The notes under the pieces were generated by a model. That model did not search any database. It was not told the DNA's origin and was given only the letters and a program-made list of their open reading frames with translations. DNA of 64,000 bases from Trichoplax adhaerens (lineage: Eukaryota; Animalia; Placozoa). The position numbers and the translations under genes are program-made. Below, in pieces: positions 678 to 33,631 of the stretch. The stretch's first letter is position 1. Every line of letters begins with the position of its first letter. The stretch is taken from the NCBI RefSeq assembly GCF_000150275.1, contig NW_002060948.1, positions 5,892,411 through 5,956,410 on the forward strand, given 5' to 3'.

Positions 678-2361
678 ATGACGTTGAAATCAAAGAGTAT
701 CGAAGCTGCAACTTCCGCTAATGCGGCTATGACTCGCTCACTCAAAGTCGTTTTCGACTTATCCTGTGCCACCCTGGTATTTTCCGTTGTTATTTTTACT
801 TTGACTTTAGCAGGCTTGTTTTTTAAGCCCGTTACCGTCTTCACTGTTGGAACACTACTATTTTTCCATGGCTTTTGGGTTTCAGTACCGGTAAGTAGCT
901 TAATTGTAACTTATTATTAGTTTACGGAGTAGTTTGAAAACTTGGTACAGATTAAAAGAGTACTTTTAATATACAGGAACTCAACTTTTAAGCACTATTT
1001 ATGGGCAATGAATTTTCATTTTTCCAGTTTTAATTCGTAGTTAATTAAAATGGCAGATATTCGACCTTTTCTATCTTTAGATACGATAAGTTGTTAAAAA
1101 AATTGATAGTGTTCTATAAAAGATGAAGACACAATCTGGACGTAGTGTAGCTTACTTTCAAGTCCTCTCATTCGTAGTAGAAGATGGCACTACTTTATCC
1201 TTAGTTATGACAAGCCGTGCTTGACAACTTATACCTGTGAGGCATATCCGTAATCGCACTAGCTATGTATAGCGTAGTTTATTCCCTTCTAGTTAGGGCT
1301 ATATCTTGTGCGCAAAGTAGTTTCAAATTTTACATACCAGTATTCTGCTATTATTTGTCTACTAAAGAATTACGACAAATTTATTATAGTACATATACTA
1401 ACACAATTTTTGATTACTGATGGCACGAATATAATAAAGATGTTTATTACCAGCGTTTTGGGCATGTGTGGATATGAAAAAGGTGTTTACAAACATTGCC
1501 CGGTATGTAAATATTCTAAACTGATCGGTTTTAACTAATGCTTACCTCGTTAAGTTTACAATAATATCCAATAAAGTGGATATGTCAACAGTGTCAAAAA
1601 TACTTTAAGCTCGTCGTTACGCTTGAACAGATGCTTTGATAAAATGAGCTCGTATAAATTAATGCAGCTAGCTAAAACATTTATTTTGTGGAGCTACACA
1701 AGTATAATGTATGAATATAATCATTTAGTGGCAGTTGATAAATCAAAATCAATTACTAAAAGCATTTAATCACAAAATTTATATCAAAAGTCATGACCAT
1801 AATTCCATTTCGGAAGGAAGTAATTAATAACATGCCAAGACTCAAAAAAACTGATCGCTATCGATGGGATTATTTCTATACACTTATATAATTTACGAGC
1901 CGATTTCGTTTTCTATATTAATCGTAGGCAACAGCTCATTTAGTCTTTGCCATCATAACTGCTATTGCAGTTCTTGCTGGTTTGGCCATTTTAGTCATGA
2001 ATTTGGTGGGAATGACTTTTTACGTCGTTCAGATTCTGGAACACCAGGAAACTAATGCACATCGTCTCCCTTCAGTGCTAATCAATGTTGCCTATGCTGG
2101 CACCATTTCAGCTACGTTGGTTTACATCTTTTTCTTCTATGCTTGCATTCATGGCGCTGTGATGTATTGCAGAGCACCGCGAAACCTTGTCGTATACAAT
2201 GTTTTGACAATGCCGGTAAGTTTGTTGTTAAAGTATATTAGCTGTTATGACCAATTCAGCCCCTTCAAGGCACAATAATGTTTCTTGTTCTCTAGGCTCC
2301 CTTAATACAGGATAACGTAAAACCGGCCTATCATAAAAGCAAGTATGGGTATGAAGTTTAA
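678..2361 (+). CDS. MS4A/CD20-like four-transmembrane protein (4 exons, ~209 aa)
   Basis: GT-AG exons 678-890, 1440-1502, 1928-2215 and 2296-2361 join in frame. Four hydrophobic segments; TM2 FHGFWVSVPMFITSVLGMCG resembles MS4A TM2. Paralogue with the same exon layout at 40480-42704. Confidence 0.7.
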
Positions 2362-8706: not shown

Positions 8707-9047
8707 ACCTAATCCAATCAGTCTTTCCTTCTCTACCAGTGGTTGTACTGATGATACACTTTCAACTAGGCTTTATCGATTGTCAAGGATACCTTGTAGT
8801 CTAGGCAATGCGTTCTATGTCAATAATGATTGAATAACAACTGGTCAAATCGTCTTTTGCAATGGCTTTTCCTTCCTATCTCACCGCTGGCTTGCTCAAT
8901 TCCGGCGCCACTTTCCTTTGCCAATGAAAGCAATTCTGTATCGTACAGACCTTCGACCGACTAGGTATTGTATTAACTCGATTTGTTTTGTTTGCTAAGG
9001 GAGGCGTGGATGGCGGAAAAGCGGAAAATTCCTTTCTGTCGTCAGCC

Positions 9048-10061
9048 GTAGTACGTGCTGCAGTCCATTCAACTCAGTGCAGTACGTACTGCAGTCCAGT
9101 CAGCTCAGTGCAGTACGTACTGCAGTCCAGTCAGCTCAGTGTAGTACGTACTGCAGTCCAGTCAGCTCAGTGTAGTACGTACTGCAGTCCATTCAACTCA
9201 GTGCAGTACGTACTGCAGTCCAGTCAGCTCAGTGTAGTACGTACTGCAGTCCAGTTAACTCAGTGCAGTACGTACTGCAGTCCAGTCAGCTCAGTGTAGT
9301 ACGTACTGCAGTCCAGTCAGCTCAGTGTAGTACGTATTCCAGTCCAGTCAACTCAGTGCAGTACGTACTGCAGTCCAGTCAGCTCAGTGTAGTACGTACT
9401 GCAGTCCAGTCAACTCAGTGCAGTACATACTGCAGTCCAGTCAACTCAGTGCAGTACATACTGCAGTCCAGTCAACTCAGTGCAGTACGTACTGCAGTCC
9501 AGTCAGCTCAGTGTAGTACTGCAGTCCAGTCAGCTCAGTGTAGTACGTACTGCAGTCCAGTCAGCTCAGTGTAGTACGTACTGCAGTCCATTCAACTCAG
9601 TGCAGTACGTACTGCAGTCCAGTCAGCTCAGTGTAGTACGTACTGCAGTCCAGTCAGCTCAGTGTAGTACGTACTGCAGTCCATTCAACTCAGTGCAGTA
9701 CGTACTGCAGTCCAGTCAGCTCAGTGTAGTACGTACTGCAGTCCAGTTAACTCAGTGCAGTACATACTGCAGTCCAGTCAACTCAGTGCAGTACTGTACA
9801 TACTGCAGTCCAGTCAACTCAGTGCAGTACGTACTGCAGTCCAGTCAGCTCTGTGTAGTACGTACTGTGCAGTACATACTGCAGTCCAGTCAACTCAGTG
9901 TACAGTAGTACGTACTGCAGGACAATCAACTCAGTGCAGTGTACAGTCCAGTCAGCTCAGTGTAGTACGTATTCCAGTCCAGTCAACTCAGTGCACTGTA
10001 CTGTACAGTCAGCTCAGTGTAGTACGTACCCCAGGACAATCAACTCAGTGCAGTACGTACT
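9048..10061. repeat. 31-bp minisatellite, ~32 units (YAGTACGTACTGCAGTCCAGTCARCTCAGTG)
   Basis: Tandem units directly visible; the overlapping ORFs cycle through three frames every 93 nt. Units degenerate at the right end. Confidence 0.95.
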
Positions 10062-10327
10062 AAACTAGTATGAATGGAATGGGCTGCCGTCCACACTGTA
10101 GACTACGACTAGAAACTACATGGAAACGACTAGAAGAAATTCATGACTCGTTTTAATACTGTACTGTACTAGGAATTTCTAGAAGTCCATGGCACTGTAG
10201 GGAACACCGGCCGGCATGAATCAACGGATGCAGAGTACACTACTGCGTCATTCATCGCATAGTGTAAAGGGATCTCTATGCCAGGATTAGTTCAACACCA
10301 ATTTCACTGGCCTAGTATAGTCATGCA

Positions 10328-15959: not shown

Positions 15960-17143
15960 TTAAGCTTCTCCATCTTCTTCGTCGATTTCACGCACATATA
16001 AAACATTATTACATCTAGAAAATAGATGCAAATACAATATTAAGACAAAAAATCCAAGGTTATCCAGTTGAACCGTATGATAACTCTATATATCGGCGTA
16101 ATAACACAAACCTGATCAAAACCTCGCCCAAGTTGCCTGTAAGTGCTCCTTCCACATACTCTTCTGTATTTGCCAACTAAGCATATCGCGTAAATATAGA
16201 TTAATTTACTAATCATCCAATTCAATTTACATTTCTACGTATAACCTTAACTTATGTTCTAAGAAAATTTAAGTTCACCAAATACCTGTAAATTCATGTA
16301 ATTATCTACAGAAACCAGGAAGCCTTTATAATCCATACCCCATTTCAATTTGACTAGTACTGGCTTGCCAGTAAGACCATTTAAGAAGGGTTTAGGATTA
16401 ATAGGAACGGTCTACAATCATTCAGAAAATAACCTTGCATCAAGTTCGTCAATCAATACTTTTCTTACTCTTTATCAAAGCATAACCTGTCATCTAGCAA
16501 GCTGACTGATGACTCAAATTCTAAGCATCCAATGATGACACTAATAAAATGTATGACCGCTTTTAGTGTACTGCATGTTATTAGATTCGAAAGCCTCTTC
16601 ACTACAAGAGTATAATATTGTAGAGATTGAATTAACTGACATTGCAAATTATGGCCATTGCATAGCAGAACTATACCTTCAACACTGATCTACAGTTTAT
16701 ACAGCAACAATAAAATAATCTATTTAAATCATAGTGCAGCATCTATCAAGACTCTAGAATCATTTTAGGTAAATTTAAAGAGGTTTTTATCTCCGTTGCA
16801 ATGTCATAGAGCCTCATTATTGGAGAAAGCCGACGAAATGTTCTCAATTCAAAGCATCGAAATCATGCTTACTGTGTACGATCGGTGTAGTGCTTATACA
16901 CTACTTAGGCTATGGTACAAAATAGCATAACAAATTGCACAAGAAACGCTGGACAAGGACGCGCGTGCTGAATCGAAATTTGCAAACCTTGAACGCGTAT
17001 GAGCATTCCATTTTTGAACTATTTTACCATTTCGATTACAATTATTTTACATTTAGACAATTTAAGAACGATTTATATATATCATACGGTAAATACATCA
17101 ATTAAAAGCAAAAGGAAACGGCTTGCAAATGACTTACCGCCAT
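15960..17143 (-). CDS. SNRPF: Small nuclear ribonucleoprotein F (SmF), 4 exons
   Basis: ATGGCG micro-exon 17143-17138, then 16411-16286, 16176-16112 and a last exon to TAA at 15960: [83 protein letters not shown]. Confidence 0.97.
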
Positions 17144-17221
17144 GAGGAATCTCCAGACTGTATAGTAGTAGAGTGCTTAAAAAAAAACGCTGCTTTACCA
17201 CAGTACAATCTAGGGACTAAC

Positions 17222-17370
17222 CGTACAGTACAGTACTGTACACTGTACGGTATCCTACTGTACAGTACAGCATACTGTACTGTACTGTACGGTATCCTAC
17301 TGTACAGTACAGTACAGTACTGTACACGGAAGTGTACAATATACTGTAGTACTGTACACTAAGTACTGTA
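17222..17370. repeat. (TACAG)/(TACTG) mixed-orientation pentamer tract
   Basis: Degenerate ACAGT/ACTGT repeats just upstream of SNRPF; a weaker tract at ~17721-17885. Confidence 0.85.
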
Positions 17371-18828
17371 TGCACAGAACTAGAAGGAGACCCGGACTGG
17401 ATTGATCACCCCCTCAGACAGACGGACTTTCTGACCAAATGATGCTGTCAATATCGAAAAGTGGTTGCTTAGTATGGAGCTTTCGTGTCTATTTTCGAAA
17501 TCACTGGTACTAATTTAAATAACATCTGCGATCTTATATAACTGTTTCCAAGCTGAGATTAGTAATAGATAATAAAATTCAATGCAATATTACTTCATTT
17601 AGAAAAAAATCAGTCAATTGAAAATCGATTGTCCTCATACTAAAGTAATGTCATGATGAGGTGTTTGGCACAATATTTTAACGAGATGCAAACGTGTCTG
17701 TCCGTCCAAGAGTGATTCGAGTAGTACAGTATTATGTACACTGTACACTGTACAGTACTGTAACTGTAACGTTCAACACGCGTCAGTCTGGTACAAACGT
17801 ACGCCACAGTATAGTACAATGGTTTAGTAGTACAGTATACTGTATTACAAAAGCATTTACTGTTCCATACTGTACTGTAGTGTAGTGGGCTGTATTCCGA
17901 GACGGTAGTGACTCATACACTGCATCTGAGAAGAGCTCTTCTTCAGACTGGATGCTTCTGTGCAAAAATAATGTCCCCTCTGTTTGTCCTAGCATGAGGA
18001 AATTTTATCCTGTACTGAGTCAATCTGCTTTCTTGACTTTATCGACATCACTTGAATGCAGTGGGTATAGTAACAATTCAATTGCTACAGGTGACATCAG
18101 TTTCTATCACAGTCGATGCCAACAGATAGAATGAATCAAGAAAGCAATGGGTTAACCATTTTCCTCCTGCAGGCCAGTAGACACGGCCATCTTCACTGAA
18201 TACAGTAATATGCATTTTAGATGCCTGCTATGCGTTGCACAGTGCGGATGTTGACTGAAGTCTAATCAGCGCATTCGTGCTTTGAAAGATTCGATAACGC
18301 TAGTACACCATCATTGCTCACTGCACAGCTGAAGCGGATCAAAGCAGTATCTTTAGGTTTCTTAGGAAATGACTGCAGCTCACAATGCTTTTAGACTTCT
18401 ATTACAGTATGATAGACTAAGGTGTTGTTGTACTATTCTACCAAAGTGTTTACCAATATTGATTTGCCTTTGATGCTCCTGCAGTCGTCGTGCATCATTA
18501 CGATTAATCGGTTTGCTAACCAACCGAGGTGTTGGGGATTTGCAATGATAGAATGACAAATTCTGCACGTACAATATAGTACTTATACAGTATATTGACA
18601 TCCTGTCTTTCGTACTGTACTCTGCACCACAGTACACTACTCAATTCAATTTCAGGGTGTTATAAAGCGATCAAAAGCAAAAATAGCCTTGTTGAAAGTA
18701 CAGAATATATCAACACTTTCACCATAGTCTTGAGTAACAAGGTACAGTAGACTATCCCATGCCATACTTAAAGAGCCCATAGCGATCTATAGAGCTGCCG
18801 ACGGATAAATCGTTCAACGAGCAAAATA

Positions 18829-18881
18829 GTCACATGTCCTCTTCGGAAGAAAACAATTGGTCGACTGGATCCTTTAAATAG
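18829..18881 (+). promoter_or_regulatory. Putative Pol II promoter of the telomerase RNA candidate
   Basis: E-box-like CACATG 18831-18836, ETS-like CGGAAG 18844-18849, inverted CCAAT (ATTGG) 18856-18860, TATA-like TTTAAATAG 18873-18881. Confidence 0.45.
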
Positions 18882-18889
18882 GGTGACGA

Positions 18890-19310
18890 CGACGACGACC
18901 AAGTTGGTCTTCCACTGCTGCCGGTGGAACTTGCAAACTTATCATCAGGATGCAGAGTTGCTCTGGCAGCTCCTAACCCTAACATTAGCAGGGTTAGCCA
19001 ATTCTGGTTTGTGTTTTTTTAAGCTAGTTTTTGTCACATTAAATACATAAAACTAGTGAGGAAAGACCGTCGTCGATGTGCTGGCTTGAAGCGGTTTTGC
19101 AAGCGCTTGGTCGATCGATTTCAAGTTATACGAGGCTAATCAGCGTACAACAAGTTCCGTAAGCAATCTTCTGATCGACTTACACGTTCTTGTTAAGGAG
19201 TTCGCTCCGACTATGATTGCTGATTAGCTGGAAGGTTGCGAGCCGTTCAGCACGTTGCGAGATAATAACTGGAGGCATTGCGTTTGGCTTAGCTTTTGGA
19301 GTCTACAAAG
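18890..19310 (+). ncRNA. TERC: Telomerase RNA (TR/TERC) candidate, ~410-430 nt, H/ACA type
   Basis: Template CCTAACCCTAAC 18972-18983. Boundary hairpin 18917-18924/18963-18970. Pseudoknot: TGTG 19010-13/CACA 19035-38, U7 loop, CTAGTTTTTGT 19024-34/ACA-T-AAAACTAG 19045-56. P1 18906-13/19060-68. P4 19074-84/19247-57. P5 19134-44/19219-29. P6 19149-54/19189-94. P6.1 GGAG-TTCG-CTCC 19197-19208. Box H AGATAA 19260-65; ACA 19305-07 plus 3 nt. 5' end uncertain (18881-18905). Confidence 0.9.
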
Positions 19311-20508
19311 TTGAGCAGCAATGATGTCTTCCAACAAACCAAATTATTAGCTGTAACTTTGCTGAATTGTAGTTGCTACTCTTTCATGCAGTAGCAATGT
19401 CAATCCAGGGATTGACTACAAGGACGAATGGGCCAAGATCTTTTTCATTTAGTAAGTTTGTATGCTTCTGTGGTTGTGTTGTTAATTCTTTGCACCCAAG
19501 TATTTAGCATGGATTAATGATTGACTATTAATCGTGAACTGTTTCTGTTCTAGAGGAGTGCCTAGTTTGCAATCAACATGCTGCATAATGGTTAATACTG
19601 GATAGAACAAGTCAAAAATTTCTTCCGGACAAGTAATGGAATAAAATTACTACTGCCATGTGTAAATTTAAAAAATATGCGTCTTTCGATAAACGCTCGA
19701 TTTATGCCACTGAGTTGAATTTGTTTGTATGTCTATAACGTTTTCTCTTTAGTAGTACCTGTCTATAATGTCAGGACTAAAGACTTTCCCATTGGAATAG
19801 ATCGATACTCGGCGATCCCCTTCGATCCGATTGGAATAGTAACTGATGAGGTTTTATAATATTTTTGCAGTATCAGCTTTGTTTTACGTTTGAAAAATTG
19901 ATAATGTGTAACGGTTGGAAGGTGATCAATTGACAGGGATTTTGCATGCATTCAGTGTAGCAATACTGAAATTTACAGTTCATTCACGGTGTAAAATTCC
20001 ATAATGCGATGTAGCAAAGTGCTAAATAGTGCTATGCAATGATTAAATTTGTAAAGTATCCTTAGTTTAACCTTTGCTAGGCGACAGACTACTGTACATT
20101 GTACAAGCGCAAAAACGATCGCCTTAGGTTTTATTATTTTGCCATCGAAACAAGGTGGTTTAGTATTTCTTATGTCGAAATTTATAACAAGCAGTATTTA
20201 GTGCATAACCATCAAAGAGCTGGACATTATGGTTTCTGCGTGGTAATGAGCAGTCAGAGACTGCACGAAAAAAATGAGGTATGCAGCAGAGTATGACTGC
20301 CACGGGCTCCCATTTCATATTCTGGTATGCAGTGGCAGTAATGGAAAGAACTGCAACAGCTTTTATTATATTTCAAAAGTGCCTGTTTACGGTTCCGTTA
20401 ACAAACGTACACTATGTACAATAATGCACCATGGATGGACCTGTTAAAATCTTTTTTATTTGCAAATAAAAATTTAGCCTTCAGAAATAACTTAATTGAA
20501 AATATCTA

Positions 20509-26773
<6,265 letters not shown>

Positions 26774-30652: not shown

Positions 30653-30770
30653 TGTCATCATATAGCTACAAATTTTTATAATATCAAGATACTTGATGAC
30701 GATAAATTTATTGAAGGAGGAATGATTATCAAGGATAAATCCACCTACTGTNNATATGTAACTAATTTNA

Positions 30771-30820
30771 NNNNNNNNNNNNNNNNNNNNNNNNNNNNNN
30801 NNNNNNNNNNNNNNNNNNNN
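30771..30820. other. Assembly gap (50 N)
   Basis: N run, with scattered Ns just before it. Confidence 1.
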
Positions 30821-33581: not shown

Positions 33582-33631
33582 NNNNNNNNNNNNNNNNNNN
33601 NNNNNNNNNNNNNNNNNNNNNNNNNNNNNNN
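33582..33631. other. Assembly gap (50 N)
   Basis: N run. Confidence 1.

Follow-up and report, generated by a model that had tools for sequence, protein, structure and literature searches.

The window analysed here is a stretch of 64,000 nucleotides of the Trichoplax adhaerens genome (G000:C1409:5892411-5956410, in an assembly of 105.6 Mb and 1414 contigs). Exon matches place SNRPF and IARS2, the latter a bacterial/mitochondrial-type isoleucyl-tRNA synthetase, on the minus strand at either side of a plus-strand locus (Table 1), which a sequence-only reading of the same DNA had put forward as a telomerase RNA (TR) gene in the SNRPF-IARS2 intergenic region. Both neighbours confirm this position, the candidate being in a head-to-head arrangement with SNRPF and in a tail-to-tail one with IARS2, and a check of the reading frames upheld the earlier statement that no protein ORF explains the region. 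The individual sequence elements listed in that reading are all present where it had placed them. Between SNRPF and the TR, at window 17188-17769, lies a repeat of very high copy number (dispersed or tandem) in which GTAC/TACAGTA is abundant, with many rearranged joints and a summed word depth of ~51,000 in DNA run X13 against ~115 for single-copy sequence; similar repeats lie at window 8988-10063. Assembly gaps (runs of N) are located at 30752-30820 and 33582-33631. A scan for bacterial-type promoters and terminators yielded nothing useful.

Table 1. Features of the telomerase RNA locus and its flanks (window coordinates; MFE, minimum free energy)
Feature	Position	Strand	Details
SNRPF exons	about 15963-16411	-	exon 16262-16411 matches TRIADDRAFT_26794 of T. 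adhaerens and SNRPF of Trichoplax sp. H2
CCAAT motif	18856-60	-	-50 to -46 from the putative start
TATA-like box TTTAAATA	18873-80	+	-33 to -26 from G18906
Telomerase RNA, best model	18906-19339	+	434 nt; RNA contigs, published interval, fold
P1, GGTCTTCC / GGAAAGACC	18906-13/19060-68	+	8 bp, one bulged A; closes template/pseudoknot domain; MFE fold
P1.1 hairpin, closed by GCTGCCGG / CTGGCAGC	18917-70 (closing strands 18917-24/18963-70)	+	-26.5 kcal/mol; MFE fold
Template CCUAACCCUAAC	18972-83	+	12 nt; two repeats complementary to TTAGGG
Segment 3' of template	18984-19003	+	apparently copied with telomeric repeats into other genomic loci; includes AGGGUUAG
Anti-template AGGGUUAG	18990-97	+	8 nt, 6 nt past template; can pair with CUAACCCU of template
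Candidate pseudoknot core	19010-56	+	P2b TGTG/CACA 19010-13/19035-38; U7 loop 19014-20; P3
P3	19024-34/19045-56 (MFE fold: 19023-34/19045-57)	+	one bulged U; U4/A4 run
P4	19075-84/19247-56, extended by 19091-104/19234-46	+	MFE fold; encloses side hairpin and CR4/5 junction
Side hairpin within P4	19105-26	+	MFE fold
P5	19134-45/19218-29	+	MFE fold
P6	19149-94	+	MFE fold
P6.1	19197-19208 (19197-200/19205-08)	+	GGAG-UUCG-CUCC; MFE fold
Box H AGAUAA	19260-65	+	fits ANANNA; 3 nt after P4, 4 nt before 3' hairpin
3' hairpin (P7/P8)	19270-19333	+	25 bp, -21.3 kcal/mol, z = -2.0
Box ACA	19334-36	+	3 nt from the putative 3' end 19339
IARS2 spliced exons	20483 upward	-	sequence match, spliced RNA contigs

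The locus is very probably the single-copy TR gene of T. adhaerens, an animal TR of the vertebrate-type H/ACA form, which was reported by Logeswaran, Li, Podlevsky and Chen in 2021 (Mol Biol Evol 38:215; PMC8480181). The Trichoplax TR gene itself is, in other words, already known and has been in the literature since that year. The paper presents one placozoan TR, that of T. adhaerens, for which its Fig. 6C draws T-PK, CR4/5 (with P6.1) and H/ACA domains, and its Table S1 gives the interval ABGP01000509.1:21534-21930 (plus strand, 397 nt). If ABGP01000509.1 begins at the end of the scaffold N-gap, at genome position 5889819, contig and window coordinates are offset by 2591, and the published interval falls at window 18943-19339 by gap arithmetic rather than by letter-by-letter comparison with the contig. 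The published rule is to place TR 3' ends 3 nt past box ACA, and the mapped end at 19339 lies exactly 3 nt past the ACA at 19334-36, so that a chance coincidence in a 105-Mb genome is not credible. TR 5' ends were predicted and not measured in the same paper, which holds no activity test of the Trichoplax TR and reports failed attempts at reconstitution for sponges; with a single placozoan in the set, it is consequently devoid of group covariation, expression data or an activity test for this RNA. A survey of Trichoplax non-coding RNAs in 2009 (PMC2655684) missed telomerase RNA.

Other features of the genome are in keeping with this identity. The sequence-only reading presupposed telomeres of the TTAGGG type, and TTAGGG arrays are found at contig ends of the same genome, which also carries an exon for the RNA-binding domain of TERT. 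The attribution to an early-branching animal is supported both by the organism, T. adhaerens, and by the presence of template/pseudoknot, CR4/5 and H/ACA domains. A covariance-model check against Rfam, which had been proposed alongside that reading, was negative: no telomerase RNA match was obtained in the window at the gathering threshold with RF00024 included, and searches of 801-, 276- and 176-nt sub-regions at E up to 10 gave no telomerase family and only chance-level matches to snoRNAs, miRNAs and lncRNAs. The outcome agrees with PMC8480181, where such RNAs are said to escape the standard tools of homology search; since the Trichoplax TR is not in Rfam, a blind scan cannot recognize it. 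One of the weak matches, a C/D-box snoRNA at 19312-81, was rejected on account of its score (16.6 bits against a threshold of 47) and a poorly placed D box.

Predicted architecture of the RNA

An unconstrained MFE fold of 18906-19339 (-146 kcal/mol) gives P1, P1.1, P3, P4, the P5/P6/P6.1 junction and the 3' hairpin, and the whole candidate folds better than its shuffled versions (z = -4.15, 0/100). P1, which had been said to enclose the core, is obtained both in this fold and, at its base, as the junction of a chimeric RNA contig (see below). Its suggested extension by GACGAC 18894-99 pairing with GTCGTC 19069-74 was not confirmed: the RNA contigs begin at 18906 and 18913, downstream of 18894-99, which is probably not part of the RNA. 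The long hairpin that the sequence-only reading had described as ending 1-2 nt before the template corresponds to P1.1, which ends 1 nt 5' of the template region. No other helix of the RNA reaches the significance of this hairpin (z = -3.8, 0/200 shuffles as good). This arrangement makes P1.1 the likely template boundary element. The 12-nt template likewise stands, being complementary to the TTAGGG found at contig ends; it occurs once in the window, and 14/100 shuffles of the window match it at up to one mismatch, for which reason the motif alone is weak. Every fold pairs template positions 18973-80 with the anti-template, and one tagged genomic locus that is copied through the anti-template (see below) indicates that the segment was accessible at least once.

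Of the H-type pseudoknot that had been proposed, the strands and topology were recovered: the P2b and P3 strands are in H-type order, the U7 loop and the U4/A4 run are in the expected places, and P3 is part of the fold. The AU-rich P3 is, for its part, no better than shuffles (z = -0.7) and hence not significant alone. The CR4/5 three-way junction, with P5, P6 and P6.1 in canonical order, is borne out as a predicted structure on which the full-RNA fold and the fold of the isolated domain agree; P6.1 taken alone is not significant against shuffles (z = -1.0). The P6.1 region also resembles the CR5 sequence of vertebrates, as represented by human.

In the H/ACA domain, P4 and the AGATAA box H were correctly recognized by the sequence-only reading, and its weaker 3' hairpin and ACA at 19305-07 are displaced by a better candidate. 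The earlier hairpin has 8 bp, of which four are G-U pairs, and is of modest stability (-9.5 kcal/mol, z = -0.76), and its ACA is buried in the distal stem of the 25-bp hairpin at 19270-19333, which forms once the region is lengthened by 29 nt. The terminal base pair of the latter, U19270-A19333, abuts the ACA at 19334-36 to give the canonical box H-hairpin-ACA geometry, so that an H/ACA arrangement is found with the published ACA 19334-36 and not with ACA 19305-07. The stronger hairpin abutting ACA 19334-36 therefore points to a 3' end at 19339 rather than 19310, and the published end is most likely the correct one on this structural model. A further ACA at 19418-20 was rejected as the marker of the 3' end, since box H would then have to be followed by two hairpins and the RNA contig extends no further than 19363. 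Two perfect hairpins lie 3' of the TR at 19372-19398 (8-9 bp) and 19400-19418 (7 bp), within the invariant block 18889-19461 described below; a part in 3'-end formation is possible, as is no function at all.

Established knowledge of animal TRs allows roles to be proposed for these parts. The RNA would probably be transcribed by Pol II from a TATA-type promoter, with a start about G18906, and the structure suggests maturation into an H/ACA RNP whose RNA ends 3 nt past ACA 19334-36. P1 would close the template/pseudoknot domain, TERT would copy CCUAACCCUAAC into TTAGGG repeats, the P1.1 hairpin would stop reverse transcription after C18972, and CR4/5 with P6.1 would supply the second TERT-binding domain.

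Transcription, constraint and the ends of the gene

Four sequencing runs (X7, X13, X19 and X20) were compared over 16800-22600. X7 and X13 cover introns and intergenic DNA evenly; they were rejected as RNA and kept as extra haplotypes. X19 and X20 were recognized as RNA by their spliced IARS2 contigs and by the lack of cover upstream of the candidate, where X19 shows none over 17770-18739 and X20 none over 17964-18739. X19 contributes one 451-nt contig at 18913-19363, and X20, a random-primed library, one 360-nt contig of depth about 5 in which the reverse complement of 18906-19072 is joined to 19069-19261. The junction of this chimera, 18906|19069, is the base of P1, as might be produced if a first-strand cDNA ending at 18906 folded back through P1 and self-primed the second strand. 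From this junction in one low-depth chimeric contig we infer G18906 as the first base of the RNA and the ability of P1 to form. The RNA-seq comparison, one of the checks put forward with the sequence-only reading, yields discrete contigs at 18906-19261 (X20) and 18913-19363 (X19) with empty flanks, in the form of assembled contigs, which do not give strand, exact ends or abundance. The 24 nt by which the X19 contig overruns 19339 could reflect 3'-extended precursors. X19 also shows cover at 19516-19709 (mean depth 5.5), between the TR and the 3' end of IARS2.

The distance of the TATA-like box fits the contig starts at 18906 and 18913. An inverted CCAAT motif further upstream is a possible Pol II promoter element by analogy with the promoters of vertebrate TRs. 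Directly upstream of the putative start there is a (GAC)5 microsatellite at 18885-18899, whose complement GTCGTCG is found at 19069-19075, right after P1; Trichoplax sp. H2 and X13 carry G>T at 18888.

Comparison with close relatives shows constraint on the RNA. The orthologous locus of Trichoplax sp. H2, fetched via the SNRPF protein, is 99.07% identical over 17800-20600, with 23 differences, none of which lies between 18889 and 19461, and the X13 and X7 haplotypes add five more variable sites, all outside 18889-19461. Thus, among the reference, H2 and two further haplotypes over 17800-20600, 28 variable sites occur in 2228 flanking nt and 0 in the 573-nt block, in which ~7 would be expected (Poisson P of none ~7e-4), which shows purifying selection. 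As to the covariation analysis put forward with the earlier reading, H2 and the two haplotypes are identical across the RNA, with no compensatory changes to be seen. Searches for more distant placozoans with an IARS2 exon as protein query gave no candidates, and with an SNRPF exon as query the close matches were confined to T. adhaerens and Trichoplax sp. H2. An SNRPF-like fragment on a long contig (P0036) was rejected as an orthologous locus, belonging to an unrelated animal and having no IARS2 nearby.

Taken together, the RNA contigs, the TATA position and the fold indicate that the published model, with its start at 18943, probably lacks 37 nt at the 5' end, and, with ends corrected to 18906 and 19339, the interval 18890-19310 is not the complete gene that the sequence-only reading had taken it to be. 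Two other delimitations of the same TR gene have to be weighed against this. The published one, beginning at 18943 without P1 and with only a short P1.1, has the start in Table S1 of PMC8480181 on its side, and we consider it unlikely, given that this start was a prediction whereas RNA contigs reach 18906 and 18913, that the TATA-like box fits a start at ~18906 and not 18943, that the hairpin 18917-70 is the most significant helix of the RNA and that the variant-free block begins already at 18889. A shade less likely still are the ends of the sequence-only reading, with P1 extended by 18894-99 and a 3' end at 19310 after ACA 19305-07: this ACA is preceded by a possible 8-bp stem and GACGAC is complementary to GTCGTC, but the stem is weak beside the alternative that abuts ACA 19334-36, the X19 contig reaches 19363 and no RNA contig begins before 18906. 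By far the least credible reading is that the locus is not a TR, but a chance interstitial telomere-like 12-mer within some other non-coding transcript or promoter region. Such a view could draw on the weakness of the 12-mer alone and the lack of an Rfam match, yet it would have to account for three TR domains folding in canonical order, for the independent identification and publication of the gene, and for a discrete expressed unit under sequence constraint whose template-flanking bases are found in telomeric insertions. A TR gene at 18906-19339 accordingly remains the best model.

Telomeric repeats tagged with template-adjacent sequence

The segment immediately 3' of the template also occurs elsewhere in the genome, beside telomeric repeats. 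Two other loci match 26 nt of the template and anti-template segment with 1-2 mismatches, and a 17-mer that joins the last repeat to the 11 nt after it was found 22 times with no more than 2 mismatches, as opposed to 2 times for the reversed control. In eight loci, two to three C-strand telomeric repeats, in many cases degenerate, are followed directly by up to ATTAGCAGGG; when aligned, these loci share only the repeats and up to ATTAGCAGGG, the flanks on both sides being unrelated, and one of them is 29/32 identical to window 18972-19003. Examples of tagged sites across the genome are G000:C1366:72506-72531 (L010), C1412:7624823-7624848 (L011), C1411:3711597-3711621 (L014), C1408:2783013-2783035 (L013), C1393:383084 and C1402:1652990.

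The bias of such a search was removed by a census of every genomic site with two perfect repeats and C followed by a non-C base, which gave 48 sites, 46 of them unique, for all of which the in-register continuation with the RNA was measured. The tag ATT was observed at 11/46 sites against 2.0 expected (P = 3e-6) and is the commonest continuation of all among the census sites; ATTA was present at 8/46 (0.66 expected; P = 3e-7), ATTAG at 3/46 (0.11 expected; P = 2e-4) and a tag of 11 nt at 1/46. The tags are graded in length from 3 to >20 nt, are always in register with the RNA and always lie on the side where G-strand synthesis would start, and the repeat numbers at tagged sites exceed the two in the TR. 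The other border of the template appears to be respected: template read-through was absent from the eight aligned loci, in which the base opposite U18971 is that of the canonical repeat and not the one the RNA would template, and P1.1 sequence is lacking, and a genome search for the P1.1/template junction found only three 2-mismatch matches, which is chance level.

These tagged interstitial sites suggest indirectly, by their sequence, that the Trichoplax RNA serves as the telomerase template in vivo and that C18972, beside P1.1, is the 5' limit of the template. When acting on DNA ends that are not telomeric, the enzyme seems to begin at a distance of a few to about 20 nt from the template on its 3' side, and a start in this region would leave internal telomeric repeats beginning with a copy of 18984 onward. 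The sites look like telomerase footprints at old chromosome breaks. Among the papers searched, none mentions both Trichoplax and interstitial telomeric sequences.

The loci with repeats and ATTAGCAGGG might instead be the termini of a satellite or of a mobile element of low copy number with a chance resemblance to the TR, in which case they would carry no information on TR function. L011 has an inverted copy of a 12-mer (the last repeat and CATTAG; L011 about 920-1050) about 100 nt away, one tagged site lies in a transposase-like reading frame, and those 2-mismatch matches that are devoid of telomeric repeats may be due to chance. Against this, similarity stops at the tag, with both flanks unrelated in 8/8 aligned loci; nor does a mobile element sit well with graded, in-register tags on the side of synthesis start, with repeat numbers above those of the TR or with the same pattern being documented for rodent TR (PMC2246262), and we therefore hold this explanation to be improbable. 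As to the individual sites, the inverted copy in L011 may represent two opposite insertions or a small inverted-repeat element. The tagged insertion in L010 (about 1040-1200, minus strand; C1366 near 72.5 kb), 1.1 kb from the contig end, seems by eye to interrupt a piggyBac-transposase-like frame. Returning to telomerase footprints as the preferred reading, it is moderately probable, in our estimate, that the past activity of the placozoan's own telomerase is preserved in its genome as a kind of fossil record and that the mature RNA is 434 nt long, with a P1 and a long P1.1 that are missing from the published model.

Implications and comparison with known systems

The analysis contributes a corrected 434-nt gene model, the first evidence of expression and constraint for the Trichoplax TR, and the tagged interstitial repeats. 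The correction matters in that the published start, predicted and probably 37 nt short, leaves P1 and most of P1.1 out of the published model for a TR that ranks among the most basal in animals. If the interpretation of the tagged sites is right, they would validate this TR and mark its 5' template boundary at C18972, and they would offer a general, biochemistry-free means of finding or confirming TRs through a common tag beside interstitial telomeric repeats, an approach that could become a TR search method in other lineages.

The published Trichoplax TR (PMC8480181) and the model presented here agree in locus and strand, in the template, in CR4/5 with its P6.1, in the box H/ACA domain and in the 3' end at 19339; compared with the published interval, ours is longer by 37 nt at the 5' end, includes a P1 helix and has a far longer hairpin P1.1. 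The predicted order of parts is that of the vertebrate TR (RF00024): P1, template, pseudoknot whose loop is U-rich and whose P3 is A/U-rich, P4-P5-P6/P6.1 junction, box H, 3' hairpin and ACA. The Trichoplax RNA differs from it in giving no match to the RF00024 covariance model at E up to 10, in a P6.1 loop of 4 nt (UUCG) instead of 5, in the 8-nt anti-template 6 nt after the template and, on the predicted structure, in a template boundary that would be formed by the template-adjacent P1.1 hairpin and not by P1.

The tagged sites, in turn, have their counterpart in rodents, in which Nergadze et al. 2007 (Genome Biol 8:R260; PMC2246262) described interstitial TTAGGG repeats that follow a few bases complementary to the part of the RNA immediately 3' of its template, a pattern they attributed to the action of telomerase at double-strand breaks. 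In contrast to the rodent sites, the Trichoplax tagged sites showed no fragments of the TR 3' domain in inverted orientation. As at the rodent TERC-ITS loci, bases adjacent to the template of the species' own RNA stand beside internal TTAGGG runs at the Trichoplax sites, in which the tags reach 10 to >20 nt, and the Trichoplax repeats thereby extend the break-repair footprint known from rodents to a placozoan.
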